The notes: a model not told the origin generated them from the letters alone. Positions 2,521 through 29,600 are shown, counted from the first letter of the stretch. The stretch is 64,000 bases of DNA from Macrostomum hystrix (GCA_950097015.1 CATNEN010000037.1:1116001-1180000); one strand, 5' to 3'. Numbers and translations are program-made.

Positions 2521-2762
2521 GTTTTTTAGAGTGAAAAATGAAGATTGGAGAAAAAAACGAAGAATTAATATTTTAGATGAACAAGTGGCTTTACGGTAAA
2601 AAGGTCGTCACCGATTACGTATTTATACCTCAGACGTGGTGAATAAAAAAACAATTAAAAATTTCCTAAGAGTTTCCTAAAACAGGAAATCCTTTTCACA
2701 TGGCTAACTATTGACAAACGGTTGCAATATAAAATCAAAATCGTTAGCAACTTACAAGAGCA

Positions 2763-2856
2763 AAAGCCAGTTATTTACAAAAGCCAGTTATTTACAAAAG
2801 CCAGTTATTTACAAAAGCCAGTTATTTACAAAAGCCAGTTATTTACAAAAGCCAGT
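2763..2856. repeat. 17-bp tandem repeat (aaaagccagttatttac), about 5 copies
   Basis: Direct reading. Confidence 0.9.
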
Positions 2857-3079
2857 TATCAGCTTTAAAAATTGGTTAAAAGTTACAGTTCAAACCGGTT
2901 TCTACCTGCCCATCAAACCAGTGCAGCCCGCCCAGAAACACAAAATTCGCTGTTTTTTTTAATCAACGAGTTTTTGGTGCTCTCTACCACACTGTGTCTG
3001 AGTCTGGCAATTGTCTTAATTCTAGCTTGTAGCTTGAATGGACGAGAGAAACTGCATTTCGCAAGTGACTGATGACTGT

Positions 3080-4570: not shown

Positions 4571-5156
4571 TCGCTTGAAGGAAACTCTAACTGGCCGAGG
4601 TTTAACAGAGCTTTCTCATTGGCTGGCACGAAGTCGCAAACGGAAATTCCGTGGGTGTGCCATAGCTGTGGTGTAAAAACCGCGGAAAAAACGTGGAAAA
4701 ACCGAAAAACATCTTTCCTAGCACAACCGCTAACGGACACAAAGACTCCATACATAATTTAATTAACTAGATACACTAATCTAAATCATTCAGATAGATG
4801 AGTATCTAGTCTGCTATGATGTAATTCGTCTATTTTTTTAGAAAAAAACCTGTGGGAACTGCAGAGCAGGCATGAATTTCCTTCTCATTTGTTGGTTTTT
4901 TTTACACAGCAGACACCTGATTGGTTGACGCTGCGAACGGGCGAAAATAAAATAAGGAATAACATTTTGACTTTCAAGCTGCAGTTTCCCAACTGTTTTG
5001 AAACCATAGGAAACGACGATATTACAATAGAAACACGTTTCTAGATCCCCGTTTTTGTGCTTTTGCAGTTCAAAATTTGTGAGTTCCATTTTGCTTCATT
5101 TTTTCAGTTAGTCAGAAGAGCTTGTTGAAATGGGTCTAAAATCTGGTAGAACAATC

Positions 5157-5280
5157 TGACATTAGACATTAGACATTAGACATTAGACATACGACATAAG
5201 ACGTTATACATTAGACATGAGACATTAGAAATTAGACATTAGACATTAGACATAAGACATTAGACATTAGACATTAGACA
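5157..5280. repeat. 7-bp tandem repeat (acattag)
   Basis: Direct reading. Confidence 0.85.
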
Positions 5281-5351
5281 TATGATAGTTCTACAAAAAA
5301 GTCTAACAGATTTTTTAAACAATCTGACCAATATCTGAGATATTTTTACAG

Positions 5352-5745
5352 ATTTCCAACATGACCAGACAGATTTCCAACATGACCAGACAGATTTCCA
5401 ACATGACCAGACAGATTTCCAACATGACCAGACAGATTTCCAACATGACCAGACAGATCTTCAATATGACCAGACAGATTTCCAATATGACCAGACAGAT
5501 TTCCAACATGACCAGACAGATTTCCAACATGACCAGACAGATCTTCAACATGACCAGACAGATTTCCAACATGACCAGACAGATTTCCAACATGACCAGA
5601 CAGATTTCCAAAACATGACCAAACAGATTTCCAACATGACCAGACAGATTTCCAACATGACCAGACAGATTTCCAACATGACCAGACAGATTTCCAACAT
5701 GACCAGACAGATTTCCAACATGACTAGACAGATTTTCAATATGAC
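5352..5745. repeat. 21-bp minisatellite (gaccagacagatttccaacat)
   Basis: Direct reading; 7-aa periodic ORFs. Confidence 0.95.
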
Positions 5746-6009
5746 CTGACAGATGAAAAAAATGACTTGACAGAATTCCAAAAATATGTGAGACATTTTC
5801 TAGATAGTCAGGCAAATTCAATAAAAAACTTGACAGAATTCCAAAAATGCTTAGTGCAGAGTGTCCTAAGACTGATAGGTTTTTCTGAAACTCTGACAAT
5901 AATAAAGGTCAGTAATAAAGAGTAATTGACACAGTAATTGTTAACGAAACTCGATCCAAACTCAGGAAAGGTTCATCGTTCAGTCGCCCCAGCAGCTCAG
6001 AGGCAAATC

Positions 6010-8536
6010 ATGCAGTGTAAGTATCCGAATACAAGAAAACTAGATTTTTTACTCCTTTACCGAAATTGAGAAACAAAACCCTGCGAATCGCAGTTCACCA
6101 GCAGGTTCTGTCTCTGTACCCGCTGCTGATGCTGCTGATGCTGATTGGTATGTCCGCAGCCGCTCCGTCCAGCTTTGAACAGAAGCGCTGGCCCGGCGAA
6201 GCGAAGCGCGCCTGGGCTGGCCGCGACAGCGGCCTCGACTCCCTGAAGGCCAGATTCGTGGCGGCTGGCCTGCTACAACCGGGTGCCACCGACGCCGAGC
6301 TGCTCAGACAGTTCCGAGCCTACCTGGACATTATTAGCAAGCCCAGGTGGACAAATCTGCTGTGCATTCATGGTGGTGTCACTCCCCAAATCCGTGGTGT
6401 CACTCCCCAAATCAGTGGTGGCACTCGCCAAAGCCATGGTGTCACTCTCCAAAAATCCATGACGTGACTCCCTAAATCCGTAGTGTCACTCCCCAAATCC
6501 GTAGTGTCACTCCCCAAATCCGTGGTGTCACTCCACAAATCCGTGGTGTCACTCCCCAAATCAGTGGTGGCACTCCCCAAATCCGTAGTTTCACTCCCCA
6601 AATCCGTAGTGTCACTCCCCAAATCCGTAGTGTCACTCCCCAAATCCGTAGTGTCACTCCCCAAATCCGTGGACGTCACTTCCCAAATCCGTAGTGTCAC
6701 TCCCCAAATCCGTAGTGTCACTCCCCAAATCCGTGGACGTCACTCCCAAAATCCGTAGTGTCACTCCCCAAATCCGTAGTGTCACTCCCCAAATCCATAA
6801 ACGTGACTCCTAAAATCCGTGGTGTCACTCCCCAAAACCATGTGTCATTCCCCAAAAACCATGGTTGCAAAATTGTTAAATATCCAGTTGAGATTTTAAG
6901 TTCGTTTGAACTAAAAAATCGATATGAAACTCGAGGCATTTTAAGTGCCTCGGATTCTCAGGGCCTGCTGGGGAAGCCCTATTAGACTGTTAGAAAGCCC
7001 ATAGAGGCTGATTGCATTGAAAGGCAATTTCAGAATTTTACAAATGGAAAGCTGGCTCGCAGGCCGCACGGTCTGGCTTCTCTCACGGGCGCCCTAGTGA
7101 CGCTCTTTTTCAGGCCAACTTTTCAGAAAAACTGAACTTTGTTCGTAATAGGTGACTGTGCTGATTCATTTTGTAGTTAGCCTACGCGTGTTGAAACGAG
7201 GTTGAAACTAACGGCAGCCCCGCCCGCCGCTCAATACGAGCTTAGAAACCATTTTAGACGCAATAATAGAATTAAAAACAATAAAAACTGTCAGCATGGT
7301 CACAGTGAGTAAAAAGCACAATGGTCAGTTGCTGCCGTGCCCTTGGTTTATACTGATCGTGCAGTTTTCAAACTTACAATAGCTGAAAATGTTAGGTAGG
7401 AACTCCAATTGCAACACTGCAGTTTGCGATCGCAGGCGACGCAGTTGTTGACGGGCCAACCACAGTATAGCTCTCGACTACAGGAGAAGACTGCGCTACA
7501 AGAAGAACAGAGATGTCTGACGTAGACATCTACGTAGACACTGACGTAGACACTGACGTAGACACTGACGTAGACACTGACGTAGACACTGACGCCGTCT
7601 TCAATCAGGTTTGTGACCACGCTTGCACGGATGCAGTGGTTGGTGTGATTCCGGCCAGCAAGACCAGCCAGTTCTTTCCTAGTACGAGATTATTGTGATA
7701 CCAGTAGCCGTCAGTATTGTAACCACGTTGGATTCCACCATCGTTGGATTGGCGACGTCCAAGGCGCGTCAAAAAATCATAGCTTGGACCGCTAATATCG
7801 ATCTCTAGTATTGAATCGTAATCCGACATGTCGACGCAGTAAAAAGAATAGGCAGCAAAACAACACTCGACTTCACTAAAGAATGTATTTGCTCTAAAGA
7901 ACGTCAAAGGAATTATTCTTACTCAACACCAAAGTTTTGCCAGATTTTGCCATAGACTAAATATTAATTTAGATATAGACTATATGTTTTTGTTTGCCTA
8001 AGCTATTCATGTTGGGACTCCACCTCCCCCTCCACACCCCGCAAGGAGTGTGGAGGTGTCACTCCCCAAAATCCGTAGTGACAATTACGGATCCGTAGTG
8101 GCAATAGGCTGTACGCTCCGTTGAACCCGCTGTATTTTTCCATCCATAGACATTCTTACCGGGCCGTGAAACCGACTGAAAGCATAGAACTCAGAGCGAT
8201 TTTACCATAGAAGTCTCAGCGGGCCATGAAACGCGTTTCACGCCCGCTAACTACAGCACCAATATGGATAGGCTGCTCGGGCTGAAACGAGGTGATACGC
8301 CTCGGCGCTACGCGCCTCGATGTTTACCTCGTTTCATCCCTCTGCAGCCTATCAATAGTGGTATATTCCTTTGAATTAAAAAAGTGATTAATAAGCATTT
8401 TGAAACCCTGAATAGTTAACTAGCTTCAACTACTATAATTTAATACTATGCTACTAGTACATAGTACATACTACTATTATTACTAATACGCAGATTCGGT
8501 CGCAGTGTCGCAGGTCCGGCGCCACCGCCAACCTGA
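6010..8536 (+). CDS. npf: Neuropeptide F / NPY-family precursor, join(6010..6016,6094..6346,8494..8536), 100 aa
   Basis: ATG CAG T|gtaagt, then cgcag|TT, then a hydrophobic signal peptide (VLSLYPLLMLLMLIGMSAAA), KR/KR/GR sites and mature peptide ...LLRQFRAYLDIISKPRF-GR. Tyr lies 10 residues from the amidated Phe. A phase-2 intron splits the penultimate Arg codon (AG|gtgga ... tactaatacgcag|A TTC GGT CGC), the conserved NPY/NPF intron position. ATTAAA at about 8605. Confidence 0.92.
6375..6850. repeat. 21-bp minisatellite (gtgtcactccccaaatccgta) in NPF intron 2
   Basis: Direct reading; starts about 30 bp after the donor; an isolated unit also occurs near 8057. Confidence 0.95.
7520..7592. repeat. 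12-bp tandem repeat (gtagacactgac)
   Basis: Direct reading. Confidence 0.85.
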
Positions 8537-8969
8537 AGTCTTCAAGCAGACATCCAGGATCTTATTGGACATTGCGATTAACAAACCGACGGATTTAAAC
8601 AATCATTAAAACAGTAAACTGATCGAGAAACAAATACAATGTCTGCGTCTTTGTAACAAGTATAAAGACTAAGTTTTTTCTGCACTTTCTCTTTGACTTT
8701 TCTGAGTTGCTATGCGGTATCAATCACTTAGAGATTGGCACGTTTTTATTACAGGAGTAGAAATTTCGTTCAAATGATTTTTTCTTCTCTATTTTAGCTA
8801 TTGTTGTCTCCGGGTTTAGACAGGGAACAAATTTACTCTTGGTCATGAGTAAATAGAAATATTTCGAACCGTTAGTCGGAGCCTAACCTCGATTTCATCC
8901 TTAAAGTTTTGCTTAACAGAAATATAGAACTTTAAAGTAGATATTTGTAGCGTGTTGAGAAATTCAAGC

Positions 8970-10445
8970 TTTGAGTAGGATATGACCTGCAGTTTGAGTA
9001 GGATATGATCTGCAGTTTGAGTAGGATATGATATGCAGTTTGAAGTAGGATATGACCTGCAGTTTGAGTAGGATATGATCTGCAGTTTGAGTAGGATATG
9101 ACCTGCAGTTTGAGTAGGATATGACCTGCAGTTTGAGTAGGATATGACACGCAGTTTGAGTAGGATATGACCTGCAGTTTGAGTAGGATATGACCTGCAG
9201 TTTGAGTAGGATATGATATGCAGTTTGAAGTAGGATATGACCTGCAGTTTGAGTAGGATATGATCTGCAGTTTGAGTAGGATATGATCTGCAGTTTGAGT
9301 AGGATATGATCTGCAGTTTGAGTAGGATATGACACGCAGTTTGAGTAGGATATGATCTGCAGTTTGAGTAGGATATGATCTGCAGTTTGAGTAGGATATG
9401 ATCTGCAGTTTGAGTAGGATATGATCTGCAGTTTGAGTAGGATATGATCTGCAGTTTGAGTAGGATATGACACGCAGTTTGAGTAAGGATATGACACGCA
9501 GTTTGAGTAGGATATGATCTGCAGTTTGAGTAGGATATGACACGCAGTTTGAGTAGGATATGACCTGCAGTTTGAGTAGGATATGACCTGCAGTTTGAGT
9601 AGGATATGACCTGCAGTTTGAGTAGGATATGATCTGCAGTTTGAGTAGGATATGACCTGCAGTTTGAGTAGGATATGACACGCAGTTTGAGTAGGATATG
9701 ATCTGCAGTTTGAGTAGGATATGACACGCAGTTTGAGTAGGATATGATATGCAGTTTGAGTAGGATATGACCTGCAGTTTGAGTAGGATATGATATGCAG
9801 TTTGAGTAGGATATGACCTGCAGTTTGAGTAGGATATGACACGCAGTTTGAGTAGGATATGACACGCAGTTTGAGTAGGATATGACCTGCAGTTTGAGTA
9901 GGATATGACCTGCAGTTTGAGTAGGATATGACCTGCAGTTTGAGTAGGATATGATCTGCAGTTTGAGTAGGATATGACCTGCAGTTTGAGTAGGATATGA
10001 CACGCAGTTTGAGTAGGATATGACACGCAGTTTGAGTAGGATATGACACGCAGTTTGAGTAGGATATGACCTGCAGTTTGAGTAGGATATGACCTGCAGT
10101 TTGAGTAGGATATGATCTGCAGTTTGAGTAGGATATGACCTGCAGTTTGAGTAGGATATGACACGCAGTTTGAGTAGGATATGATCTGCAGTTTGAGTAG
10201 GATATGACACGCAGTTTGAGTAGGATATGATATGCAGTTTGAGTAGGATATGACCTGCAGTTTGAGTAGGATATGATATGCAGTTTGAGTAGGATATGAC
10301 CTGCAGTTTGAGTAGGATATGACCTGCATTTTGAGTAGGATATGACCTGCAGTTTGAGTAGGATATGACCTGCAGTTTGAGTAGGATATGACCTGCAGTT
10401 TGAGTAAGGATATGACACGCAGTTTGAGTAAGGATATGACACGCA
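8970..10445. repeat. 23-bp minisatellite (tttgagtaggatatgacctgcag), about 64 copies
   Basis: Direct reading; 23-aa periodicity in all three minus frames. Confidence 0.97.
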
Positions 10446-10924
10446 GTATGACCCGAATTCGCTTTTAAGCCACAGAAAAAGATAACAAATTGCATCTACA
10501 GGAAAAAGCAGTTTTTTTAATTATCTTTTTATAGAAATACAGCCAGGAAATCGAGAGAATCGAGAGACTTCCCTTTGTGTCTTCAATAACTTCAAGCAAT
10601 AACAAGAATGCAATTAATGACAGAATGTGTAAATCTTGTATTTAGAGAATCCGCTTTTAAATATTGGATTGCTGGGAGTGGAAAAGTACGAGTTAACAGT
10701 TTTCCCTAATAATTCAACACTTATTTTTCCTGTGCCAAAAATCCCAAATTTTAATCAACTGACAGACTTCTGAGGAATAAACAGTACGGCAAAAACGCCC
10801 CATTACAATCAGAACAAATTGAAATGAAAATACTCCCCTAAATTAGGAACAGATCCGATAAATCTCCCCCTAATGGGAGGACGGATCCCAAAAGCTTGCC
10901 TAATCGAGAAGATCAAATAAAAAA

Positions 10925-11340
10925 TCCCCTAATTAGGAACAGATCCCATGCAACTCCCCTAATTGGGAAAAGATCCCATGCAGCTCCCCTAATTGGGAAA
11001 AGATCCCATGCAACTCCCCTAATTGGGAAAAGATCCCATGCAACTCCCCTAATTCGGAAAAGATCCCATGCAACTCCCCTAATTGGGAACAGATCCCATG
11101 CAACTCCCCTAATTGGGAACAGGTCCCATGCAACTCCCCTAACTGGGAAAAGATACTATGCAACTCCCCTAACTGGGAACAGATCCCATTAAAATCTCCT
11201 AATTGGGAAAAGATACCATGCAACTCCCCTAATTGGGAACAGATCCCATGCAACTCCCCTAACTGGGAACAGATCCCATGCAACTCCCCTAATTGGGAAC
11301 AGATCCCATGCAACTCCCCTAATTGGGAACAGATCCCATT
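10925..11340. repeat. 30-bp minisatellite (aactcccctaattgggaacagatcccatgc)
   Basis: Direct reading; 10-aa periodic ORFs. Confidence 0.93.
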
Positions 11341-11467
11341 AAAATCTCCTTGCGGGGAACAGATCCCACAAAAATCTGTTGCAAGGAATAGATACCATTA
11401 TAATCCCATTCACAGAACATATTCCATAAATGCCGCACCAAGTAACTAATTCCTAACACAGCCAGTC

Positions 11468-11686
11468 TCAGTCCCGCTGCAGGTCCGGCTCAGTCGACAG
11501 CAACGGCAGCAGCAGCCGTTGGCAGGCCTGGTCGCCGCGCTCGCGTCGGTTCTCGCACTTGGCGATGCGAGAGCCGAATTGCATGGCCCGCTTGGGTCGC
11601 ACGGCGGCTTTGCACAGGCCCAGACGCCAAGCACACAGGCGCAGGAGCAGCTTCTCCCCGACTCCGCGATCTTGACTGAGGTCCGC
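11468..11686 (-). CDS. ASNSD1: ASNSD1 exon 11 (terminal): [16 protein letters not shown]...[13 protein letters not shown]...stop
   Basis: acccag|GCG acceptor, phase 0, TGA at 11468. Confidence 0.93.
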
Positions 11687-14600
11687 CTGGGTCAAGTCAA
11701 ATTGAGTAGGGATAGGTCAGAATTGAGTAATGGGAAGTTGGGAGTGGGTCATTGAAATTGTCCAGAGAATAATTTCATGCAAATAGATTGGAATTAGGCC
11801 ATATGGGAATGTGTCAGGAGTAGGTCATGGGAATGGGTCAGAAGTTGGTCAAGGGAATGGGTCAGGAGTTGGTCATAGGAATGGGTCAGAAGTTGGTCAT
11901 GGGAATGAGTCAGGAGTAGGTCATGGGAATGGGTCAGGAGTAGGTCATGGGAACGGGTCAGGAGTAGGTCATGGGAATGGGTCAGAAGTTGGTCAAGGGA
12001 ATTGGTTAGGAGTTGGTCATGGGAATGGGTCAGGAGTAGGTCATGGGAATGGGTAAGGAGTAGGTCATGGGAATGGGTCAGAAGTTGGTCAAGGAAATGG
12101 GTCAGGAGTAGATCTTGGAAACGGGTCAGGAGTTGGTCATGGGAACGGGTCAGGAGTAGGTCATAATGAGTCAGGAGTAGGTCATGGGAATGGGTCAGGA
12201 GTAGGTCTTGGGAATGGGTCAGGAGTTGGTCATGGGAATGGGTCAGGAGTAGGTCTTGGGGATGTGTCAGGAGTAGGTCATGGGAATGGGTCAGGAGTTG
12301 GTCATAGGAATGGGTCAGAAGTTGGTCATGGGAATGAGTCAGGAGTAGGTCATGGGAATGGGTCAGGAGTAGGTCATGGGAACGGGTCAGGAGTAGGTCA
12401 TGGGAATGGGTCAGAAGTTGGTCAAGGGAATTGGTTAGGAGTTGGTCATGGGAATGGGTCAGGAGTAGGTCATGGGAATGGGTAAGGAGTAGGTCATGGG
12501 AATGGGTCAGAAGTTGGTCAAGGAAATGGGTCAGGAGTAGATCTTGGAAACGGGTCAGGAGTTGGTCATGGGAACGGGTCAGGAGTAGGTCATAATGAGT
12601 CAGGAGTAGGTCATGGGAATGGGTCAGGAGTAGGTCTTGGGAATGGGTCAGGAGTTGGTCATGGGAATGGGTCAGGAGTAGGTCTTGGGGATGTGTCAGG
12701 AGTAGTTCATGGGGATGTGTCAGGAGTTGGTCATGGGAATGTGTCAGGAGTTGGTCATGGGAATGTGTCAGGAGTTGGTCATGGGGATGTGTCAGGAGTT
12801 GGTCATGGGGATGTGTCAGGAGTTGGTCATGGGAATGTGTCAGGAGTTGGTCATGGGAATGTGTCAGGAGTTGGTCATGGGGATGTGTCAGGAGTTGGTC
12901 ATGGGAATGGGTCAGGAGTTGGTCATGGGAAAGGGTCAGGAATGGGAGGTCGAATCGATGAATAAAGTCGATCATTTCAGCGGATAAGGAAATGCTTTCG
13001 CTTCATTTCGTGGTTAATAGAATGAGTGACGCGAGTTGGGTTCATGTTGTGTGTCAACAAGGATTTGAGTAGCACCTTCTTCCACGGCGGCAAGTTTGCC
13101 AGGTAGTTGACTAGCCGCTCGTCAAGATAGGGAAATCTGGCCTCCCTGCCGTGATCTGCCACCATTCTGTAGGTAAAATGGGTTTTCAATATACTAATAG
13201 TAGTGAGTAGAGTGTGTTGCGCTTTTTAGTGATAAAAAAGCATACGATATATAGTACAAAAATATGATAGCTCATATTCGTAGATTAGTCGATAATGATC
13301 ACACTGCTGTGGTTGACGCACTCAACTCAGCCAATCGGGTGATTAATACATCTATTAAATCAATGAGATTATGGTGCAAGCAATAATATGCATGTCATCG
13401 ATTTGTGAAACCAAATCCTACGAGCCACTCCCTGCGCGTTTAAACTGATTAACTAATGACGGCTTTGACGTGTGAGAATTTTAGTTAATGTAACAAGACC
13501 ATGCTTATGAAGACAGTAGGATAGACTGGCACTGTGAGTGAGAGAGTGACACTGTGAGTGAGTGAGTGACACTGTGAGTGAGAGAGTGACACTGTGAGTG
13601 AGAGAGTGACACTGTGAGTGAGTGAGTGACACTGTGAGTGAGAGAGTGACACTGTGAGTGAGAGAGTGACACTGTGAGTGAGTGAGTGACACTGTGAGTG
13701 AGTGAGTGACACTGTGAGTGAGAGAGTGACACTGTGAGTGAGTGAGTGACACTGTGAGTGAGAGAGTGACACTGCGAGTGAGTGACTGCCTCACTGCCTC
13801 ATTAGAAGAGGCAGTGAGGGAGAGTTAGAAGAGGCAGTGAGGGAGAGTTAGAAGAGGCAGTGAGGGAGAGTTAGAAGAGCCAGTGAGGGAGAGTTAGAAG
13901 AGGCAGTGAGGGAGAGTTAGAAGAGCCAGTGAGGGAGAGTTAGAAGAGGCAGTGAGGGAGAGTTAGAAGAGGCAGTGAGGGAGAGTTAGAAGAGGCAGTG
14001 AGGGAGAGTTAGAAGAGGCAGTGAGGGAGAGTTAGAAGAGCCAGTGAGGGAGAGTTAGAAGAGGCAGTGAGGGAGAGTTAGAAGAGGCAGTGAGGGAGAG
14101 TTAGAAGAGGCAGTGAGGGAGAGTTTGAAGGGGCAGTGAGGGAGAGTTAGAAGAGGCAGTGAGGGAGAGTTAGAAGAGCCAGTGAGGGAGAGTTAGAAGA
14201 GGCAGTGAGGGAGAGTTAGAAGAGGCAGTGAGGGAGAGTTAGAAGAGGCAGTGAGGGAGAGTTTGAAGGGGCAGTGAGGGAGAGTTAGAAGAGGCAGTGA
14301 GGGAGAGTTAGAAGAGCCAGTGAGGGAGAGTTAGAAGAGGCAGTGAGGGAGAGTTAGAAGAGGCAGTGAGGGAGAGTTAGAAGAGGCAGTGAGGGAGAGT
14401 TAGAAGAGGCAGTGAGGGAGAGTTAGAAGAGCCAGTGAGGGAGAGTTAGAAGAGGCAGTGAGGGAGAGTTAGAAGAGGCAGTGAGGGAGAGTTAGAAGAG
14501 GCAGTGAGGGAGAGTTAGAAGAGGCAGTGAGGGAGAGTTAGAAGAGGCAGTGAGGGAGAGTTAGAAGAGGCAGTGAGGGAGAGTTAGAAGAGGCAGTGAG

Positions 14601-17600
14601 GGAGAGTTAGAAGAGGCAGTGAGGGAGAGTTAGAAGAGGCAGTGAGGGAGAGTTAGAAGAGGCAGTGAGGGAGAGTTAGAAGAGGCAGTGAGGGAGAGTT
14701 AGAAGAGCCAGTGAGGGAGAGTTAGAAGAGGCAGTGAGGGAGAGTTAGAAGAGGCAGTGAGGGAGAGTTAGAAGAGGCAGTGAGGGAGAGTTAGAAGAGG
14801 CAGTGAGGGAGAGTTAGAAGAGGCAGTGAGGGAGAGTTAGAAGAGCCAGTGAGGGAGAGTTAGAAGAGGCAGTGAGGGAGAGTTAGAAGAGCCAGTGAGG
14901 GAGAGTTAGAAGAGGCAGTGAGGGAGAGTTAGAAGAGGCAGTGAGGGAGAGTTAGAAGAGGCAGTGAGGGAGAGTTAGAAGAGGCAGTGAGGGAGAGTTA
15001 GAAGAGCCAGTGAGGGAGAGTTAGAAGAGGCAGTGAGGGAGAGTTAGAAGAGGCAGTGAGGGAGAGTTAGAAGAGGCAGTGAGGGAGAGTTAGAAGAGGC
15101 AGTGAGGGAGAGTTAGAAGAGGCAGTGAGGGAGAGTTAGAAGAGGCAGTGAGGGAGAGTTAGAAGAGGCAGTGAGGGAGAGTTAGAAGAGGCAGTGAGGG
15201 AGAGTTAGAAGAGCCAGTGAGGGAGAGTTAGAAGAGGCAGTGAGGGAGAGTTAGAAGAGGCAGTGAGGGAGAGTTAGAAGAGGCAGTGAGGGAGAGTTAG
15301 AAGAGCCAGTGAGGGAGAGTTAGAAGAGGCAGTGAGGGAGAGTTAGAAGAGGCAGTGAGGGAGAGTTAGAAGAGGCAGTGAGGGAGAGTTAGAAGAGGCA
15401 GTGAGGGAGAGTTAGAAGAGCCAGTGAGGGAGAGTTAGAAGAGGCAGTGAGGGAGAGTTAGAAGAGGCAGTGAGGGAGAGTTAGAAGAGGCAGTGAGGGA
15501 GAGTTAGAAGAGGCAGTGAGGGAGAGTTAGAAGAGGCAGTGAGGGAGAGTTAGAAGAGGCAGTGAGGGAGAGTTAGAAGAGGCAGTGAGGGAGAGTTAGA
15601 AGAGCCAGTGAGGGAGAGTTAGAAGAGGCAGTGAGGGAGAGTTAGAAGAGGCAGTGAGGGAGAGTTAGAAGAGGCAGTGAGGGAGAGTTAGAAGAGGCAG
15701 TGAGGGAGAGTTTGAAGGGGCAGTGAGGGAGAGTTAGAAGAGGCAGTGAGGGAGAGTTAGAAGAGGCAGTGAGGGAGAGTTAGAAGAGGCAGTGAGGGAG
15801 AGTTAGAAGAGGCAGTGAGGGAGAGTTAGAAGAGGCAGTGAGGGAGAGTTAGAAGAGGCAGTGAGGGAGAGTTAGAAGAGCCAGTGAGGGAGAGTTAGAA
15901 GAGGCAGTGAGGGAGAGTTAGAAGAGCCAGTGAGGGAGAGTTAGAAGAGGCAGTGAGGGAGAGTTAGAAGAGGCAGTGAGGGAGAGTTAGAAGAGGCAGT
16001 GAGGGAGAGTTAGAAGAGCCAGTGAGGGAGAGTTAGAAGAGGCAGTGAGGGAGAGTTAGAAGAGGCAGTGAGGGAGAGTTAGAAGAGCCAGTGAGGGAGA
16101 GTTAGAAGAGGCAGTGAGGGAGAGTTAGAAGAGGCAGTGAGGGAGAGTTAGAAGAGGCAGTGAGGGAGAGTTAGAAGAGGCAGTGAGGGAGAGTTAGAAG
16201 AGGCAGTGAGGGAGAGTTAGAAGAGCCAGTGAGGGAGAGTTAGAAGAGGCAGTGAGGGAGAGTTAGAAGAGGCAGTGAGGGAGAGTTAGAAGAGGCAGTG
16301 AGGGAGAGTTAGAAGAGGCAGTGAGGGAGAGTTAGAAGAGGCAGTGAGGGAGAGTTAGAAGAGGCAGTGAGGGAGAGTTAGAAGAGGCAGTGAGGGAGAG
16401 TTAGAAGAGGCAGTGAGGGAGAGTTAGAAGAGGCAGTGAGGGAGAGTTAGAAGAGGCAGTGAGGGAGAGTTAGAAGAGGCAGTGAGGGAGAGTTAGAAGA
16501 GGCAGTGAGGGAGAGTTAGAAGAGCCAGTGAGGGAGAGTTAGAAGAGGCAGTGAGGGAGAGTTAGAAGAGGCAGTGAGGGAGAGTTAGAAGAGGCAGTGA
16601 GGGAGAGTTAGAAGAGGCAGTGAGGGAGAGTTAGAAGAGGCAGTGAGGGAGAGTTAGAAGAGGCAGTGAGGGAGAGTTAGAAGAGGCAGTGAGGGAGAGT
16701 TAGAAGAGGCAGTGAGGGAGAGTTAGAAGAGGCAGTGAGGGAGAGTTAGAAGAGCCAGTGAGGGAGAGTTAGAAGAGGCAGTGAGGGAGAGTTAGAAGAG
16801 GCAGTGAGGGAGAGTTAGAAGAGGCAGTGAGGGAGAGTTAGAAGAGGCAGTGAGGGAGAGTTTGAAGGGGCAGTGAGGGAGAGTTAGAAGAGGCAGTGAG
16901 GGAGAGTTAGAAGAGCCAGTGAGGGAGAGTTAGAAGAGGCAGTGAGGGAGAGTTAGAAGAGGCAGTGAGGGAGAGTTAGAAGAGGCAGTGAGGGAGAGTT
17001 AGAAGAGCCAGTGAGGGAGAGTTAGAAGAGGCAGTGAGGGAGAGTTAGAAGAGGCAGTGAGGGAGAGTTAGAAGAGCCAGTGAGGGAGAGTTAGAAGAGG
17101 CAGTGAGGGAGAGTTAGAAGAGGCAGTGAGGGAGAGTTAGAAGAGGCAGTGAGGGAGAGTTAGAAGAGGCAGTGAGGGAGAGTTTGAAGGGGCAGTGAGG
17201 GAGAGTTAGAAGAGGCAGTGAGGGAGAGTTAGAAGAGGCAGTGAGGGAGAGTTAGAAGAGGCAGTGAGGGAGAGTTAGAAGAGGCAGTGAGGGAGAGTTA
17301 GAAGAGGCAGTGAGGGAGAGTTAGAAGAGGCAGTGAGGGAGAGTTTGAAGGGGCAGTGAGGGAGAGTTAGAAGAGGCAGTGAGGGAGAGTTAGAAGAGCC
17401 AGTGAGGGAGAGTTAGAAGAGGCAGTGAGGGAGAGTTAGAAGAGGCAGTGAGGGAGAGTTAGAAGAGGCAGTGAGGGAGAGTTAGAAGAGGCAGTGAGGG
17501 AGAGTTAGAAGAGCCAGTGAGGGAGAGTTAGAAGAGGCAGTGAGGGAGAGTTAGAAGAGGCAGTGAGGGAGAGTTAGAAGAGGCAGTGAGGGAGAGTTAG

Positions 17601-20600: not shown

Positions 20601-23600
20601 ATTTCCCAACGGACAAGACTAATTCCGATTTTAATCCGGCTTGCAAATTTGGCCCAGTTTTTTGGTGAGAAGGTCGAATTAGGAGTTTAAAGAATCTGGG
20701 ACCAGCTACAATGAATCAGAGGAGAGTGTTTCGTAATCCTAGATTTTTCCCATAGGGAAATATTCTCAAAGCGAAAGTGTTCAACCTGAGGAAAACTGAT
20801 GTGACTTGTTTTCTTATTTAAAAACAAGCGAAAAGAGAAGTCATAAAAATGTCGTTGCCGTCAGATTAGGGCAATTTTATTGACAGCAATTTTGTCGCCA
20901 AATTAGTTTCTGCGGCTAATCACCTCAGACTGATCCCATGGGAACATGCTATGGATTGGAATAAGTGGCTCTCCAGAATTAGAAAAGAGGATGTAGGATA
21001 AGACGGACTACTGGCTTTGCTAGCAGTTTTGTGAAAAGTCTCTGAAAATTATTTTGAGATCAACGATTAGGACTTGTGCGAAAAAATGTGAGTGAACAGT
21101 TTTTTTTCAAACGATTAAATTGATTTTAGCAAAGGTTTTCCTAATAGAAAGTCCTTGATTATAACATAAAGCATAAATTAGAAATTAGTAGTGCAACTTT
21201 TTGGTGCATTTTCAAAGCGACTGAGATTTAATCGAGTTTTATTTTATAATCTCAGCTTTGATCCTAATGATCTGTATGAATGGGTGGTGACCAGAGCCGA
21301 GATAGTAATTGAATTAGTGAGAATATGTGCACTGATCTGAAAACGACGGCATCTAAAACTAAACCCTATCGGGCCAAATGTACAGCCAGTGGACATGGCT
21401 GCGTACAACTGTTTAGTCCATGGACTGGTGTGCGATGTTCACAACGACATCAAACGAGGCGATAACATACGAGCCTTAACACTGGGCATTAACAATCAAG
21501 CGCTTGATGAAGACTGCTGCTAAACAGTAGCATCTAGTTGACACGAAATAGTAGAAATACTAGTATCTAGCTAGAGTGGAAGGGCCACCAATCAGCCAGC
21601 TCTGAGGCATGTTAAACTGCACAGCCAATCAGCCAAAGCGGAGTAAGAAAAAAGCAATGGGAAAATATTTTGTGTCTTGCAGATTCCCAAACGACTCCCC
21701 ATGATCCTGTTTTCCTTTATAATCTCCTACCGGCAGAATCCAACCCGAATCGACACTAAAATACCCTAATTGAGGTAGCTAAAGCAACACTATACAATAT
21801 GAGCCTGATTCTAGTGGACGATAGTCTGCGCGAAATCTGCCGCCGAGGCAGATTCTGCGGCGCCATCGGAAGGGAATTCCGCGGTGAGTGAGTCACATCC
21901 TACATGTACTATGTGTACTAATACGTATTAGAACGGTCCTGAAAAGCCAGTACACTTAAGACCAGATTAGTAAAAATATAAAGTGCTAAATTTACATGTA
22001 ACATTCTTTGTGTGTCAGTGTCTATTATGTTCACCAATGTAAATGCGCTCCTCATGGACATTGTTAAATGAATTTGTAAGATAAAAAGCACCAATGAAGA
22101 CTCAGTTTTTCGATAAATGTTTAGAGTAACATGATTTAGCTTAAAAAAAGTAGAATTGTAAGTAAGGTAAAACTTTAAGTTCTAGCTATTTTATGGTTAG
22201 CATAAATGATCCTATTTTTAGCCAAAAATCGCTCTCAGTTTTAATTGCGAAGAATGCCAACTTCAAAAAGACTGAGTGCAAAGTACGAGTAAAGCATAAT
22301 TTTAATTGCAGACTTCGAAGCCTTTTTGTAGTCTACGAGCTACGGTACTTAAGCAGCAGGTCAAGGGCAACTCTTACACCAAAGATGCTTCTCAGAATCG
22401 AACAACGTCCTTTGAAACACCCAGGATAGATAAAATCGCAACAAGGGCGTTTCGATAGAGCTGCTAATTGGAGAATCGATCGATATAGAGCGAAGAATAA
22501 CATTACCTCTGCGTTTTTTCTTAAGGACTGCTAGGTCCATCCCTGATCTTGACATCGTTTTTTAATCAATTCGAACTAAATCCAATACTTAGTATAACGT
22601 AATACGAGTACTTGAAGAGCGTAAGACCTACAAGCTGTACCTTACGTAACTCAAGTTATAAACTATCGAATCTATAACAACTCGTTTTCCGGCACCAAAT
22701 AAGCCGTCGCAACCATTTCTCTCCATGTTGAGCATGTTGAACATGTTATATATGCAACTGAAAGATTCTAACGAAGGGCAAGCACACTGCATTGGCTAGC
22801 ACTTTTTTGGCTTTTGATCAATATCATCAGAATCATATTCAGCATAGTCGATGCTCACTATAACTGGTGGCACACGATGCATAAAGGCTTCGTCTGTTTG
22901 TATTTTGAGTGCGAAAATTTCCACCCGGATAAAAATTTAGATTCCTCACAAACCGGGCTTCACGCATGGCTTTCGCCGCTAGGTGAAGCGTTGCAAGTGC
23001 TAAGTAGTAACACACCTTAGTAGCTGACCCCAAAGGATCAGCCTCTTAGCAGGATTAACAATGCTTGCTGATGCAAAAGACAATCTAATTGAAGCGAACG
23101 AATTTCACGCAGTCAGGTCGAATGTGGCACTCCAGCTACCGCGCTGAACTCTCTTAGAGATGAGGAGAAATTGAAAATATTTTCTGCTTATAAAAAGACT
23201 TGTTTCAAGAAGGAGTAGTCGTGTTCAAAGCAAAGTTAAATATATATTTCAAATTTCACTCTTTTTATTGTCTATTTTTAGCGCCGAAGGAGGATCGAAA
23301 TCTGACAGCCGAGCATCCCTACGTCCTGTTCGCGCACTGCATGTGGTGCACCAACGCCGACCAGAAAAACATGATAGCCGAAATGTAAGTTAAAACACGC
23401 GGTTACGCATGAGTCCTGTTAGCCAACGGTTTAATCAATGCCGAAAATTGAAGAATACAGATGGATAAAACACATCATATGGATCGGGTATTGAAATGGA
23501 TTATAGAAGAATGGAACAGCGGGAAGAGTGGGCTTTCGGAAAGACTAATTTTCTGATACAAGATGGGTACATGCTGTAAAAAAAATTGAGACTCTATAGG

Positions 23601-26600
23601 CGTTCATTGAATTGAACACGGAGTACTACCAAACCAAAGGCAGTGGAATGTATTGCAGCAAAATCAAGAAAAAACGCATAATTCTAGACATATTTTTCCT
23701 GTCGCTGTAACAGGTCCCTGTCAACTGCAAACCTCTAGGGCGTTTCCAATCAACATAAAACCTATTTTTCTGTTGACGCTCACAGAATGTCTTGGTTAAA
23801 GCCCCCCTTAATTTATTTCAAAGTCACACAAAAGTCCTTCCAAGCAACGAAATTCTTTCAGAATGCATACATTTCACTTGCTTTTATACATCTCCACACT
23901 CAAACCCCAAATCTTCAACTACAGAGGCGACTGCATAAACCACTATGTGACGTTCATTAACTACAGCGAGCCAGTGCCGCCAATGATGTACGCCGATCCG
24001 ACTGACGGCGCCGCAGTCACCGAGGCTAATGGTTCTGGCGAGAAGCCACGTGAAAATATCGCTGTGCTGGCTATCCTGCTGAGCCTATACTCCGTGCTTA
24101 TCTGTGTCGGCTTGTTCAGCAACCTGCTAGTGGCTATCATTCTGGTGCGCAACCGAGCCTTCACCAACATCACCAACTTGTTCGTGCTGGCACTATCGCT
24201 AAGCGACATATTAATCTGCGGCATGCTCATGCCGGCGCTGGTCTTCCACGACATGACTACAAGGAACTATCTGACATTCAGCCTGCCGCGTACACTCTAT
24301 TGCAAGTTCTTTTTAATATCCTTGAACGTGCCTATCTACGCTAGCTGCCTGATTATCCTGTGGATCTCGGTGGACCGCTATCGCATCATCTGCCATCCGC
24401 ATCGAAGCCGCATGACGCTGCGCCAAGCCCGAGGCCTGCTCCTTTTCACCGTGTTCCTAGGTCTGCTAGTTCACTCGCCAATCATCGCGTTTAACACGGT
24501 CGACAAGCATCGAGATTACGGTTGCGCCGAGCGCTGGCCAGATAAGGAGCTTAGGCTGGCCTATTCAATCAGTGCATTCTGCCTGCAGTTCTGCACCCCA
24601 CTCATTGTCACCGGTGTGCTGTACTTTCGAATTTATCGTCGCTTAACAGAACGCGTTCTGCGTCGCAGGGACGTTGAACGCAAGCATCGAACTAATAAAA
24701 TCCTAATTAGCATTGTGATCAGCTTTGCTTTCTTCTGGAGTCCCTGGTCAATCTTCAATGTCATCAGCGAGGTGGAGCAATATCGCAAGAATAGTCCAGA
24801 AAAGTTGGCTAACTTTCTAGACTGCATCTCCGTGACCAAGTCGTGGGACGCCATCAATGCCAATGTGCATAGCACATTTAATTCGGAGGGTAAGCTTTGA
24901 GTTGAAGAAGCTCTTTGAGTAAAATTGGAGCATTCACGATACTCGCCTTCTACAAGAAAAAATAAACCATCAACATAGTATTCATATTCAAGTTCCCTAA
25001 CCTTTTAGTTATCAGCAGGCTTAGTTGTTTGATATTATGCATGATATGCATGTGCATGCAAGCATGATACATGATGTGATGATGCTTGATTTGATGTGAT
25101 GCAGTTGTCATAGGTTGCCTAAAAAGTCATAGCCCCCCTGATCGCGACTGCTTCCATTGTGATTTTGCAGCTGACTCGAGTTCATAAACCTTATTGCAAG
25201 ACCATCGTCAGAACCTTCGTCATATACGTTGTATTTTAATATAGAAACTAAAGACAAAAACAGCGGTATAAACTATTTCGCCGAGAAAAAAACGAGGCAC
25301 AAACAAAGAAGCTCTTGGTGAAGTGAAAAAATACTATGTAGTTCAAGCTCAAAGACTGACGTTTCATCATACTATCAAGATCGATGGGACACTGTCAGCT
25401 GCTGCGTGAACAGGAGACTTTCACGACAGAAGCATCTGACATGCTATTCCTGAGCTATAGACAAAAGTGGGAGAAAATGAGAGCAGGAAACTCTCTTGTG
25501 TTGGGTTGTCACAAGTCTGTAGACTAGGCCCCCATGTTTTAATTCTATATTTTCACAAGTTTCAGGGCACACAACGCGATTTTCAAAGTGCCTCTCAAAG
25601 TCTGCGATCCCGAGAGAACTGCAGTCACTTGGACCAGTTTGTGACTATTTGATTAGTAGGACAATGGAAAACAGGAGAAAATGTCTGCTACTAGACGGCT
25701 ATTTAGTGGCGGCAGAAACAACAGCAGACAGATAGCTCAGAGGAGGGGGCTAAAAGGCAGTGGAGCAGCTGGCCCTCCATTATCGCCACTTCCTTCATCC
25801 AATCCGGCTAAAGGGCGACGTACGAAATCGATTTCCTGCTCACCAAAGCCGCCTTGTTCAGGGACAGGTTAGTTTAGTTGGCAGCAGCGGTGCTAAAAGC
25901 AGAAAAATTAAGTGAGATAGATAGAGTGAAAAGGAAGGAACAAAGTCAGGCAAAAGGAGAAGAGAAAAATGACGGGAGCGGTCGGTGAGCCTGCATTGCC
26001 TAGTGAGTGAATTAGGACAACTATGCCTACCACTACTCATCCCGGCTCAGACGTCTATTTCTCTCAACCCCATCATTTTAGTTTCCATGAGGCCATCTTT
26101 CAGGTTAATTAATGAGTCGAGAGGGGAAGCGCGAGAAAAACGGAAAAGGCCAGCTTTTAGATAGGGGTTCTCTTTTAGAAGAAACGAATTCGTTGCTATC
26201 CGTGAGGGTGCACTCTGAAAGCGTGGGATGAAAAAGGGCCAGAAAAAGAAGTCCATGCAAGCTAGGAGGGAAGACGGAGCAGCTACTTGGAAAAATCGCT
26301 CTGTCCTGCTTGCTCAGTTGAAGCTACAATTTTGCAGCCTTTTTGCAGCAGTTGAACCAGATACAGTTGTCTGTAATTTCGTAGAAACCAATGAAAAGAC
26401 TGTACTCCAGAAGAATATATTTGATTGATTTATGTACTATAGATTAATATATAGATACAAATCCCAAAACAACTATCAAGGAATAGGCGGCGATCATAGG
26501 CGGTGAAAGAGAAGACCACTGGAAAAACTGACAACCTCTTTCGCGTAAAAATTACCTTAACAATAGGGTAGTAGGGCGGCGAACGTTAATAGCAGAATGC

Positions 26601-29600
26601 AAAAAATCCTATGGTTTTAGGAATCTAATAAAAAACCCTAGGCTCAATAAATACCAAAATAATTCTCTAGGTCACGTTCGCTCACTATCTTGACATCGCA
26701 CTCGATTTTTGCTTTGACTCGCAATAAAGAAACAAGACTCCACCTTCCTGACGTTGAGTTGCGTCGTGTTAAAAAGTCGTCATGATTAGACATGACGATC
26801 AGAAGTAGATCCGGATGCTATTGTGGTAGGCGCTTTGACTGAAAACTGCACTGCAAGATCCTCTTTGATATAAATTATTGTGTCATAAATAAGAGACTAA
26901 CTGGCATTATGATTTCCAGAAATCCGACTCCACAATCACATCTCGCCCGTTAACGATTCACATCCCTTAACAATAATTATGTCACTGTAATTGACTGATC
27001 ATGGCGCTAATACATTACAAAGCACCATATGGCTTTTATCCAGGTAGCAGAATCCTAAACACAATCGCCCAATAGTCGTGCACTATTTCGCAATATAACA
27101 ATTGGTAGCATTGTATTGACATAGATTATATTAGCTGATTAAGTTAGATTTGAACTATCGCAATGTGATCAGGGATTTGGCTGACAGTGCAATCAAACAG
27201 CAGTCTATCTTCTCTCGCTGATCCCAACGGGAGCATCAATGAACGAGGACTCGGCCAAGCTGAGCTATCGGGATTTGATGAAACTGCAACACGAGGAACG
27301 CACTAGAGTAAACACACTGGAATTTGATGCCGCTATGATAGCTAACTATTTGTTCAACCCGCATCAATGTGGATCTATTATCTGGCACATGCTGTTTAGA
27401 TAAGATAGGCGCCCAACGAGAGAAAAGTAAAGCTTAAATAGGATCACAGCTGCCGTAAAATTATATCTCTGTCACTGCGCTGGTTGCCTGGTCTCATTCA
27501 CTGACCCATCGCGGTCCAATGTTATTATGCCTGTCACTCGAAAATTAGTGTTAATCTTTAACCCATTACTTGTCCTTTCGTTTTACTTATCTGTCCAGAT
27601 ATTCGTAGATCTGAGTACGCCATCCTCTTTGACAAATGTAAGTCAGTTAGTTTTCGGTTCTTCCCGGGAGTTTATCTTCATCAAATCCACATTGCCTGAT
27701 ATTGAATTGTCGAACCTTTTAAGATCCCTTGGAGAAATTCCTAGCAAATTATGACAGTGGATTAAAACACGTCTCATGAGGCACGGGCAAGCTCACTATG
27801 CACCGCATGTTATTCGGCGCTTATCTTGGTACTGCTAATATTGCTCTATCAGAGTCTGTAAACACTTGTGCTAGGAACAACCAGCACTGCATGATGATAT
27901 CGAGTTTCCGTCCCTTTAGTCGGCGGTTAACATCAAAATCCAATATCTCCAAAGTGGATCACCAATCCAGTTAGTGTTAGAAATGCGATACTTAAAGCTC
28001 GAGGTATGGAAATGTTTGTTCCCACAGTGCTGCCACTGAAGAGCCCCAACTTTTCACTCGATCGTCAGGCTTTATGTAGTGCTCATGTCAGGTTTATACG
28101 TGACATGGCATCGCTTTTAGCTTCCTTTCTTTATCGCAGCGCAGTTTCAGTTTCAAGACTAATGGTGTTTAACAACAGTTTCAGTCGCTTTTTAGACGTT
28201 TAACGAGAGGATATTTAACAACAGTTTCAGTCGCTTTTTAGACGTTTCACGAGAGGATGTTTAGCAACATTTTCAGTCGCTTTTTAGACGTTACACAAGA
28301 GGGTCTTTAACAACAGTTTCAGTCGCTTTTTAGACGTTTCACAAGAGGATGTTTAGCAACATTTTCAGTCGCTTTTTAGACGTTACACAAGAGGATGTTT
28401 AACAACAGTTTCAGTTACTTCCTAGACGTTTCACAAGAGGCGGTATACGGTTCACTATTTTTGTTGCACAACAAAAATATTAAGTTACTCTTAAGTCGAT
28501 AAACTGGTTCATAAAACCTTTTTAGCTGTTGAAGTGCATATGAGGTAGGTTTTAACCAGAAATGGTGCAAAACTTTTGCGCCAATGGATAAGTCTCAGGC
28601 ATTAGGTTGTTGTTATTGTTATTGCTTGTTGATTGCTTGGTATTTCTTATTTCCTAAAAACACAGGCGAATCCATAGTCCAGGCGTCCTGGAATCTCTAC
28701 GAACTGTTTGTGCGCCTGTTCGCCCTGGGCTCGGCCTGCGTCAATCCCTATTTGTACGGCTGGCTGAACGAGCACGTCCGAGCCAGTCTCAAGGCCTGTC
28801 TGGGCCGCGGTGGCGCCTCCGAAGACGCAGGACAGACTGGAAGACGCGGTGTCAATGACAACAGCCGACGCCGGCGCATCGTCGGAGGTCAGGATCCTGA
28901 CGATACGCTCTATCCAGCTGGCGACGATGCTGCCGACGACGACAATCTGGACGATGCCAGCCATGACTGCGATGAGGATCACCGTCGAGACTGCGAGCGG
29001 CGCCAATGCGCCAGCGACCAATCAGCGGCGATGACAACCGTTGTCAAGGTAAACAAGCAAGAGGGGAAAGACGACGATGCCGGTCCCGAGGCGGCTCTAG
29101 TGATCATTGATGGCGGCGAGAGCTGCGAATTGATGATGACTCACCGCCCGCAGCAGTCGCCGCTGCTGACACCGCAGCATATCGAAGAAAACGGCGAACA
29201 CGAAACTGGGGCGGTTTAGCGACTGACAACAGCCTGTTTCTATCACCTGCCCGAAGAAACCTGCTCGATCTATGAGATAACATGGAAGATTGAGCCATTT
29301 CAGACCGACTGAAATAAAGAAACGAAACGGCAGATTTGCTATGAAAAACTAGTTAAATTAAAAATCAAAGATCTAAATAAATAAATAAATAAATAACTAT
29401 ATATATTTCTTTATTTAAGAGAAATCCAATTTCTTGGAAAGCATTTACTGCACCTTTACCCCTTTACCGTAGCAGCTGATGCGGTAATTCAAAGTGAAGT
29501 CAAGTCCCAAACTGAAAAGACTGACGCTGGCAACTGCAGCGCAGCAGTGCAGGAGAAAGACGTGGCAGATTGACAGAGCCGAGGTCGCGGAACTCTCAGG

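Follow-up and report, generated by a model that had tools for sequence, protein, structure and literature searches.

An NPY/NPF-type precursor gene and an ASNSD1-nested type 3 NPYR gene in Macrostomum hystrix: a probably incidental proximity

A stretch of 64,000 nucleotides of the Macrostomum hystrix genome (GCA_950097015.1, CATNEN010000037.1:1116001-1180000; hereafter the window, located on contig C37) carries on its plus strand a neuropeptide precursor gene of NPY/NPF type and, 13.3 kb further downstream, a gene for a rhodopsin-type G protein-coupled receptor (GPCR). Both are ordinary new members of their families. The reading judged probable is that these are two genuine neuropeptide-signalling genes with the family placements given below, that the receptor gene has been nested since ancient times in an intron of ASNSD1, and that the closeness of the two genes is most likely incidental. 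The ancient nest within ASNSD1 would thus account for the position of the receptor, and the NPF gene would be a lineage-specific neighbour of that nest. The initial annotation of the window had instead proposed a co-located ligand-receptor pair forming a co-regulated or co-duplicated module.

The coding sequence of the receptor is distributed over four exons (the slash in sequences marks a splice site):

21799-21883, plus strand, coding exon A, MSLILVDD...EFR, ending in phase 1, conserved with 9561-9647 of the M. lignano locus L036
23282-23384, plus strand, coding exon B, ending in phase 2, conserved with the M. lignano loci L047 and L036 and with the N-terminus of the M. lignano protein P0002
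23925-24889, plus strand, coding exon C, with an N-glycosylation sequon, transmembrane segments (TM) 1 to 6, DRY, CAERWP, RKHRTN, FWSPW and a long third extracellular loop (ECL3)
28666-29219, plus strand, coding exon D, with TM7 (NPYLYGWLN), an acidic C-terminal tail and the stop codon

The exons join in frame, in phases 1, 2 and 1, into 1707 nt encoding 568 amino acids (aa). Exon C matches the 7tm_1 domain of Pfam with an E-value of 9e-37, and M. lignano proteins that extend across the G/GC junction between exons C and D confirm both this junction and the long ECL3. Exons A and B were detected through their conservation with M. lignano paralogue loci, and they place the coding start 2.2 kb earlier than in the earlier model. 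The receptor had been described as lying about 15 kb downstream of the NPF gene on the same strand; the strand holds, while the start is at 21799 rather than at about 23983, and the gap shrinks from 15.4 to 13.3 kb. The hallmarks cited for its identity (CAERWP, RKHRTN, NPYLYGWLN) are all present, but they are not diagnostic of NPY receptors, CxExWP being found in all neighbouring clades.

A HMMER scan with the receptor returned 5791 relatives, 47 of which fell below 1e-30, and a tree of 47 rows was calculated with IQ-TREE (LG+C20); its rows contain no named NPFR, sNPFR or NPYR reference and no GRL105. The window receptor falls within a 100/100 clade of four Macrostomum paralogues, denoted here by their contigs as C37 (the window copy), C2, C34 and C39. 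This clade sits on a long stem, and the C37 copy has its shortest branch. It is nested in a flatworm clade (100/99) that comprises Schmidtea NPYR-11, -13, -14 and -16 together with tapeworm, fluke and monogenean proteins. The flatworm clade is in turn nested in a lophotrochozoan clade containing a Mya 'NPF receptor-like' protein, 'PrRPR-like' proteins of Lingula and Lineus, and proteins of Owenia and Nucella. The closest database proteins are M. lignano GPCRs, which are 51-71% identical to the window copy and 73-90% identical to the other copies in the same genome; three of them (P0001, P0002 and P0005) are orthologues of the C39, C34 and C2 copies, respectively. The best named match is Schmidtea NPYR-13, with an identity of 36%. 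'Type 3' designates NPYR-11 to -16, a lophotrochozoan-specific group that includes Lymnaea GRL105 (PMC4862687). Judged by its sequence, the receptor is a member of the NPY/RFamide-receptor superfamily and of the flatworm 'type 3 NPYR' clade.

The Macrostomum type 3 receptors have in common a Cys-rich N-terminal extension (ICRxGxFC..., AHC[MVL]WC), for which two small upstream exons code. Exons of this extension were located in the M. lignano loci L036 (9561-9647 and 9947-10021) and L047 (11596-11679). M. lignano P0001 has apparently been annotated without the first of the two small upstream exons, and the M. lignano fragment P0004, which bears the UniRef name 'Innexin', is actually a piece of a GPCR.

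The evidence that the position of the receptor is inherited comes from ASNSD1, which occupies the opposite strand. A PF00733 scan of the genome gave three Asn_synthase matches in the window, all on the minus strand: 44986-45069 (profile positions 20-47), 29856-29927 (120-143) and 13070-13168 (228-260). Combined with cross-species comparison, the following exon-bearing segments were recognised:

11468-11716, minus strand, open segment with the last coding exon of ASNSD1, stop codon at 11468-11470; 59% identity over 49 aa to L049 5438-5584, E 2.6e-11
12980-13225, minus strand, open segment with an ASNSD1 exon (Asn_synthase profile 228-260); 23.1 bits, E 7.4e-6 (above the cut-off), with matches in L046, L049 and L050
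19982-20077, minus strand, open segment with an ASNSD1 exon, low-coordinate bound of the host intron; 53-60% identity to L046, L049 and L050
29832-29972, minus strand, open segment with an ASNSD1 exon, high-coordinate bound of the host intron; Asn_synthase profile 120-143
30200-30373, minus strand, open segment with an ASNSD1 exon; cross-species matches
45010-45756, minus strand, open segment with an ASNSD1 exon; Asn_synthase profile 20-47

We take the translated segment 11471-11716 to resemble the C-terminus of ASNSD1. On the minus strand, the gene thus extends from about 48.7 kb (48698) down to its stop at 11468-11470, and the receptor gene (21799-29219), antisense to its host, takes up most of the ASNSD1 intron between the exons at about 20.0 and about 29.85 kb.

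For comparison, four receptor loci of other flatworms were examined, namely those of Trichobilharzia szidati (L045), Hydatigera (L046) and the assemblies GCA_053525275.1 (L049) and GCA_008360955.1 (L050). The receptor of L049 is the sister of that of Hydatigera, and the receptor of L050 groups with the Trichobilharzia clade. According to the gene tables, an opposite-strand Asn_synthase gene spans the whole 48-kb locus round the receptor in L045, flanks the receptor as two fragments in L049, and lies beside the receptor in L050, again on the opposite strand. The translated-segment comparison yielded these correspondences:

Window 30200-30373: L049 12841-13014, L046 15444-15614, no match in L050
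Window 29832-29972: L049 11910-11990, L046 13690-13776, no match in L050
Receptor gene: L049 10001-11407, L046 10001-11392, L050 10001-29663
Window 19982-20077: L049 8163-8252, L046 3208-3303, L050 6853-6942
Window 12980-13225: L049 7657-7770, L046 1258-1368, L050 1477-1581
Window 11471-11716: L049 5438-5584, no match in L046 or L050

In L046 and L049, the ASNSD1 exon matches are collinear on the minus strand on both sides of the receptor. Support from the fluke clade is partial: in L050 the ASNSD1 exons were matched on one side of the receptor, and L045 gave one weak exon match in addition to the spanning called gene. The host intron is identical in Macrostomum and in both tapeworm assemblies, and the two fluke-clade loci are consistent with it. 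Since these lineages have the receptor in the same ASNSD1 intron, the nesting predates the split between Macrostomorpha and Neodermata. Judged from this comparison, the C37 copy is the one that occupies the ancestral locus, and the position of the receptor is therefore independent of NPF.

The precursor gene at 6010/6094-8536 (plus strand) is assigned to the NPY/NPF type on the following structure:

6010-6016, plus strand, putative first coding exon of 7 nt (ATGCAGT/gtaagt), predicted from the sequence
6094-6346, plus strand, exon 1, with signal peptide, KR sites, ...DSGLDSLKARFVAAGLLQPGATDAELLRQFRAYLDIISKP and bases 1-2 of an Arg codon
6347-8493, plus strand, intron of 2147 nt in phase 2, with a 21-bp satellite inside at 6376-6856
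8494-8536, plus strand, exon 2, with the last base of the Arg codon, F-G-R-SVAGPAPPPT and the stop codon, providing the amidation and cleavage signal

The open frame at 6066-6467 reads ...LLMLLMLIGMSAAAPSSFEQKRWPGEAKRAWAGRDSGLDSLKARFVAAGLLQPGATDAELLRQFRAYLDIISKPR and continues into the satellite, and the donor of exon 1 at 6346 has the form AAG CCC AG/gtggac. The pattern AGRTTYGGNMR has one match in the whole window, at 8492 (...ctaatacgcag/A TTC GGT CGC AGT ... ACC TGA). As 2.4 matches are expected by chance, this single match is by itself at chance level, and the gene model is supported because two paralogues exist in the same genome. The spliced C-terminus reads ...K-P-R-F-G-R-SVAGPAPPPT followed by the stop codon, with Lys in place of the first Arg of RxRF/Y. 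From the junctions at 6346 and 8494 it follows that the intron is in phase 2, interrupting the Arg codon of the terminal RF after its second base. A phase 2 intron that splits the Arg codon of a C-terminal RF or RY is a hallmark of NPY/NPF genes across phyla (PMC7314547; PMC8536682). The predicted peptide has 42-47 residues, depending on the N-terminal cut, and follows a KR-rich spacer; Tyr is found at -10 and Leu at -17 from its C-terminus. In flatworm NPF, both of these positions are held by Tyr.

The two further NPF-like paralogues are located on contigs C39 and C34, and the Arg codon is split at the same position in both. The C39 paralogue (C39:12873595-12873903, minus strand, at 12.87 Mb) reads ...DLDALKSRLVALGKLHAAATDEDLARYFRQVLEALSRPR/gtgagg, and its acceptor 625 nt downstream (ag/A TAC GGC CGA AGC GTC) supplies RPRY-GR-SV. 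Its end ...LSRPR/Y-GR predicts an RPRY-amide, which is similar to the end of vertebrate NPY, and its core contains EDLARYF, comparable to EDMARYY in NPY. The C34 paralogue (C34:2891488-2891931, plus strand, at 2.89 Mb) reads ...DLDAMKENLISRGYLRPGASDEDLARLIRQLIDIYSRRR/gtaaat and ends in ...IYSRRR. A search of the 27 kb downstream did not reveal its exon 2; this copy may have a very long intron or an odd C-terminus, or may be decaying. Conservation among the three precursors is highest in a 38-residue core, and the pro-region varies freely.

The least certain part of the precursor is its beginning. Exon 1 has no in-frame ATG upstream of 6129, in contrast to the paralogues. Splicing of 6010-6016 to 6094 is in frame, yields MQFHQQVLSLYPLLMLLMLIGMSAAAP and restores a leader that can be aligned to the C39 signal peptide; the alternative is a start at ATG 6129, with a signal peptide that would be very short. 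The leader is hydrophobic, and its start codon would be supplied by either of these. The precursor had been called complete in the initial annotation: its Arg-codon intron and KPRF-GR end are borne out, and completeness requires either the putative 7-nt exon or ATG 6129. It was therefore considered that the gene model could be wrong, or the gene dead, satellite-embedded and unexpressed. The start of exon 1, which without one of these two solutions lacks its ATG, is what such a reading would predict, and it agrees also with the failure of a word search with the precursor to find any homologue, with the lack of any Pfam match for exon 1 at E<=1 (Hormone_3, PF00159, included), and with the missing exon 2 of the C34 paralogue. 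It is nevertheless very improbable in our judgement, given the open frame, the canonical GT-AG intron at the family-specific position, the G-R after the terminal Phe and the conservation of the 38-residue core among the three paralogues. A protein language model also placed the precursor among generic neuropeptide prohormones, with NPF at rank 9 (score 0.87), which is a weak lead. The PP-fold motif PxxP is absent from the NPF sequence. Neuropeptide KY (NKY), another long lophotrochozoan peptide with an RF/RY-amide end, was rejected as an identity, as the central motifs FW[RQ]P[LM]G[YG] and G[YF]WIWMPAQG, which are diagnostic of NKY (PMC6425005), are absent.

If the gene is processed like others of its type, the signal peptide would direct the precursor to secretion, prohormone convertases would cut at the KR/R sites, and the C-terminal ...KPRF-Gly-Arg would be trimmed and amidated, giving a peptide of 42-47 residues ending in ...IISKPRF-amide. 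This amide would be expected to act on a rhodopsin-type GPCR.

The proposal that the adjacent NPF is the cognate ligand, and that a preserved linkage or a common origin makes the two genes a co-regulated or co-duplicated module, was weighed against the genomic context. It is favoured by the common strand, by the distance of 13.3 kb and by the expansion of both families in Macrostomum, each NPF paralogue lying on a contig that also carries a receptor paralogue. However, the locus of the receptor is accounted for by the ancient nesting in ASNSD1, and opposite-strand ASNSD1 exons and satellites intervene, so that the genes form neither an operon nor a pair of immediate neighbours. The paralogues do not repeat the arrangement either: the NPF gene and the receptor are separated by 646 kb (0.65 Mb) on C34 and by 11 Mb on C39, and the C2 receptor stands alone. 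The PF00733 scan of the genome found no second ASNSD1 copy beside the other receptor paralogues; Asn_synthase matches were confined to C37 and one further match on C38, which weakens a paralogon or en-bloc duplication as an explanation.

L049 is the single tapeworm locus long enough to extend beyond the 3' end of ASNSD1. There, where NPF would be expected, lies a Peptidase_S9 (prolyl oligopeptidase) gene, and in the 3.2-kb gap before it neither an [RK]-x-R/gt exon preceded by an open frame nor a match to NPF by tblastn was found. The prolyl oligopeptidase gene of M. hystrix is found on C39; therefore, synteny of this flank fails in both directions. In the loci L036, L044, L045, L046 and L047, no NPF-like exon was found within 10 kb of the receptor. 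Around P0001, P0002 and P0005 in M. lignano, no NPF exon was found up to a distance of 10 kb either; since these are orthologues of the other copies, their loci say nothing about the window pair. In L050, an open reading frame (ORF) at 7627-7787 (plus strand) has a leader-like start 2.2 kb upstream of the nested receptor and on the same strand. It was considered as an NPF exon and rejected, as its end ...YQSRVR/gt and a possible ag/A TTT GGT AAA 12 kb downstream do not exceed chance expectation and do not resemble known fluke NPF; the ORF probably represents noise or a 5' exon of the receptor.

With regard to synteny, the nesting of the receptor itself is kept in tapeworms, and NPF is missing beyond ASNSD1 in L049. 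The module proposed in the initial annotation is not supported, in view of the position inherited with ASNSD1, the intervening exons and satellites, the Peptidase_S9 gene of L049, the distant paralogues and the single ASNSD1, and it is accordingly regarded as improbable.

Several observations nevertheless weigh against an incidental neighbourhood. For three NPF-like genes, a distance of ±15.4 kb and a genome of 220.45 Mb (42 contigs; the window being C37:1116001-1180000), the chance of such an adjacency is 0.0017 for the four type 3 receptors, 0.003 for seven receptors of the NPY superfamily and about 0.03 for at least 69 rhodopsin-type matches (about 0.002-0.03 for the family pairing), which is low for one genome. 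All three NPF-like genes lie on a contig with a type 3 receptor paralogue, the chance of this being about 0.03 for the other two copies, with the window copy that raised the question left aside. The neodermatan negative comes from one locus (L049) and from flanks of ±10 kb, and in M. lignano, the closest sister genome, no orthologue of the window copy of the receptor was found. Finally, Lymnaea GRL105 is a deorphanised NPF receptor (PMC4208409), and its membership of type 3 makes a cognate relation plausible. On the other hand, the adjacency is unremarkable once very many windows have been inspected for any ligand-receptor adjacency, and an incidental closeness remains the reading that we consider probable.

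Apart from the linkage, the type of ligand must be considered. Among solved human receptors, the window receptor matches PrRPR best (84.7 bits), followed by OX1R (77), NPY1R (74) and NPY2R (62); it thus scores higher to the PrRP receptor than to NPY1R or NPY2R and is not most similar to the canonical NPY/NPF receptors. In the phylogeny, for which the initial annotation had called, the receptor lies inside the type 3 NPYR clade (100/99); its nearest solved human match is PrRPR, ahead of NPY1R. The ligand-contact residues of NPY1R include Q3.32, N6.55 and D6.59 (NPY1R numbering). At position 3.32, the window receptor has Leu in place of the Gln of NPY1R; N6.55 and E6.59, which align with N283 and D287 of NPY1R, are kept. 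Position 3.32 is typically F or L across the lophotrochozoan clade, and the arthropod clade keeps Q.

Three other receptors of the same genome, L010 (C41:1145228), L009 (C39:19313548) and L011 (C2:4365622), are much closer to human NPY2R. L010 matches it with 193.6 bits (5e-56), compared with 62 bits for the window receptor. In the tree, these three represent a second flatworm group, which forms a separate 100/96 clade with arthropod 'PrRPR-like' receptors. By their similarity, L009-L011 are candidate alternative receptors for NPF. Another GPCR, L023, which lies 72 kb from the C39 NPF paralogue, was set aside as not NPYR-like, having a long third intracellular loop and no CxExWP.

These data raise the alternative that the window receptor serves a short RFamide (sNPF/LFRFamide-like or PrRP-like) or a flatworm-specific ligand, and that NPF signals through the NPY2R-like receptors (C39 at 19.31 Mb, C41 at 1.15 Mb and C2 at 4.37 Mb). 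This would fit the lead of PrRPR among the human matches, the hemichordate 'PrRPR-like' protein that is the sister of the lophotrochozoan clade (98/86), the hydrophobic residue that this clade has at 3.32 (NPY1R and the arthropod clade usually having Q there), and the strong match of L010 to NPY2R. The only deorphanised planarian pair, NPY-8/NPYR-1, moreover employs a type 1 receptor (PMC4862687). Set against this are the reported presence of Lymnaea GRL105 in the group and the abalone NPF receptor, which groups with that of Lymnaea, both being activated by long NPF peptides (PMC8536682). In addition, the 'PrRPR-like' names are automatic annotations, and the tree that carries them is one free of reference NPFR and sNPFR. 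Taken together, this alternative is a serious one, with a likelihood somewhat short of even.

The same evidence bears on the pairing of the two window genes. In favour of it are the report of NPF-activated GRL105 in the type 3 clade and the retention of N6.55 and E6.59, which match the Arg-contact residues of NPY1R; the replacement of Q3.32 by Leu and the three receptors far nearer to human NPY2R (193.6 vs 62 bits) count against it. That the window peptide activates the window receptor is considered unlikely, an estimate that takes account of the three peptides, the four type 3 and three NPY2R-like receptors, and the mollusc precedents for NPF receptors in this clade. A more elaborate scenario, in which the ...KPRF-amide would be the selective ligand of the ASNSD1-nested receptor, the ligand gene would have come to lie beside the nest in Macrostomum to give a tightly linked pair, and the paralogues, three of the peptide and four of the receptor, would have diversified together, is given only a slight chance.

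The spacer between the genes is largely repetitive. The NPF stop (8536) lies tail-to-tail with the ASNSD1 stop at a distance of 2.9 kb, and 13.3 kb separate it from the receptor ATG. At least three minus-strand ASNSD1 coding exons are found in between (within 11471-11716, 12980-13225 and 19982-20077), together with the following:

8970-19425, no strand, six satellite arrays with units of 23, 30, 24, 20, 23 and 44 bp, in total 8.46 kb or 64% of the 13.3-kb spacer

A scan of the spacer ORFs against Pfam detected no domain; the short ASNSD1 exons escaped that scan and were revealed by the PF00733 family scan and the cross-species comparison alone. A 23-bp array at 13802-17732 extends over 3.9 kb at 98% identity. 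More than 20 satellite families with units of 7-63 bp occupy 1378-19425 and 29955-58875 of the window, several of them within introns of the NPF, GPCR and ASNSD1 genes. A PIF1-like helicase element with common flanking ORFs was also found in two copies of opposite orientation, at 31658-33380 (plus strand) and 61877-63373 (minus strand); they match PF05970 at 3e-22 and 3e-17, and Pif1_2B at 1e-18. The element is possibly of Helitron type. Its first copy (31658-33380), located in an ASNSD1 intron, is split over several frames.

The npf gene of Moniezia expansa (Mair et al. 2000, as cited in PMC7314547) and abalone Hdh-NPF (PMC8536682) serve as reference NPY/NPF precursor genes. Like these, the window gene encodes one long peptide with an RxRF/Y-Gly-basic end, a phase 2 intron in the Arg codon and a short C-terminal flanking peptide. 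It differs from them in the length of the peptide (42-47 vs 36-40 residues), in Lys at -4 (KPRF, not RPRF), in the KR spacer after the signal peptide, in the lack of an N-terminal PxxP motif and in Leu at -17; no second intron was found in its C-terminal flank, in which it also departs from known NPF genes. The receptor belongs to the same clade as Schmidtea NPYR-11, -13, -14 and -16 and has CAExWP, RKxRTN, FWSPW and NPxLYGWLN in common with them. It is distinguished from them by N6.55 in place of S, by the Cys-rich N-terminal extension of about 110 aa from two extra exons, and by the four-gene expansion. None of these Schmidtea receptors has a known ligand.

Schmidtea NPY-8/NPYR-1, in which a long NPY-like amide acts on a rhodopsin-type receptor, may serve as a model for the window peptide, but NPYR-1 is of 'type 1' and groups with Drosophila NPFR and C. 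elegans NPR-11 in a clade other than that of the window receptor. Lymnaea GRL105 belongs, according to the published tree, to the same lophotrochozoan group as NPYR-11 to -16, and Haliotis Hdh-NPFR groups with the Lymnaea receptor in a separate study. Among human PrRPR, NPY1R and NPY2R, which are the best structural matches, NPY1R resembles the window receptor in N6.55 and an acidic residue at 6.59; the window receptor differs by Leu in place of Q3.32 and by its low identity. As for NKY, its receptor in Platynereis is an orthologue of the sNPF receptor (PMC8557429).

Were the pair cognate and its linkage selected, this would be an unusual case of co-location of a neuropeptide ligand and its receptor in an animal, and it would offer a quick route to a ligand for the flatworm 'type 3' NPYR clade, in which none is known and which has parasite homologues of interest as drug targets. 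Irrespective of this, the Macrostomum catalogue gains three genes of NPY/NPF type, one of them with an RPRY end, and four type 3 receptors, and the gene model of the window receptor is corrected to four exons at 21799-29219. The most useful new fact is the nesting of the receptor in ASNSD1, which, being conserved, provides a robust orthology anchor for an orphan clade of flatworm receptors.

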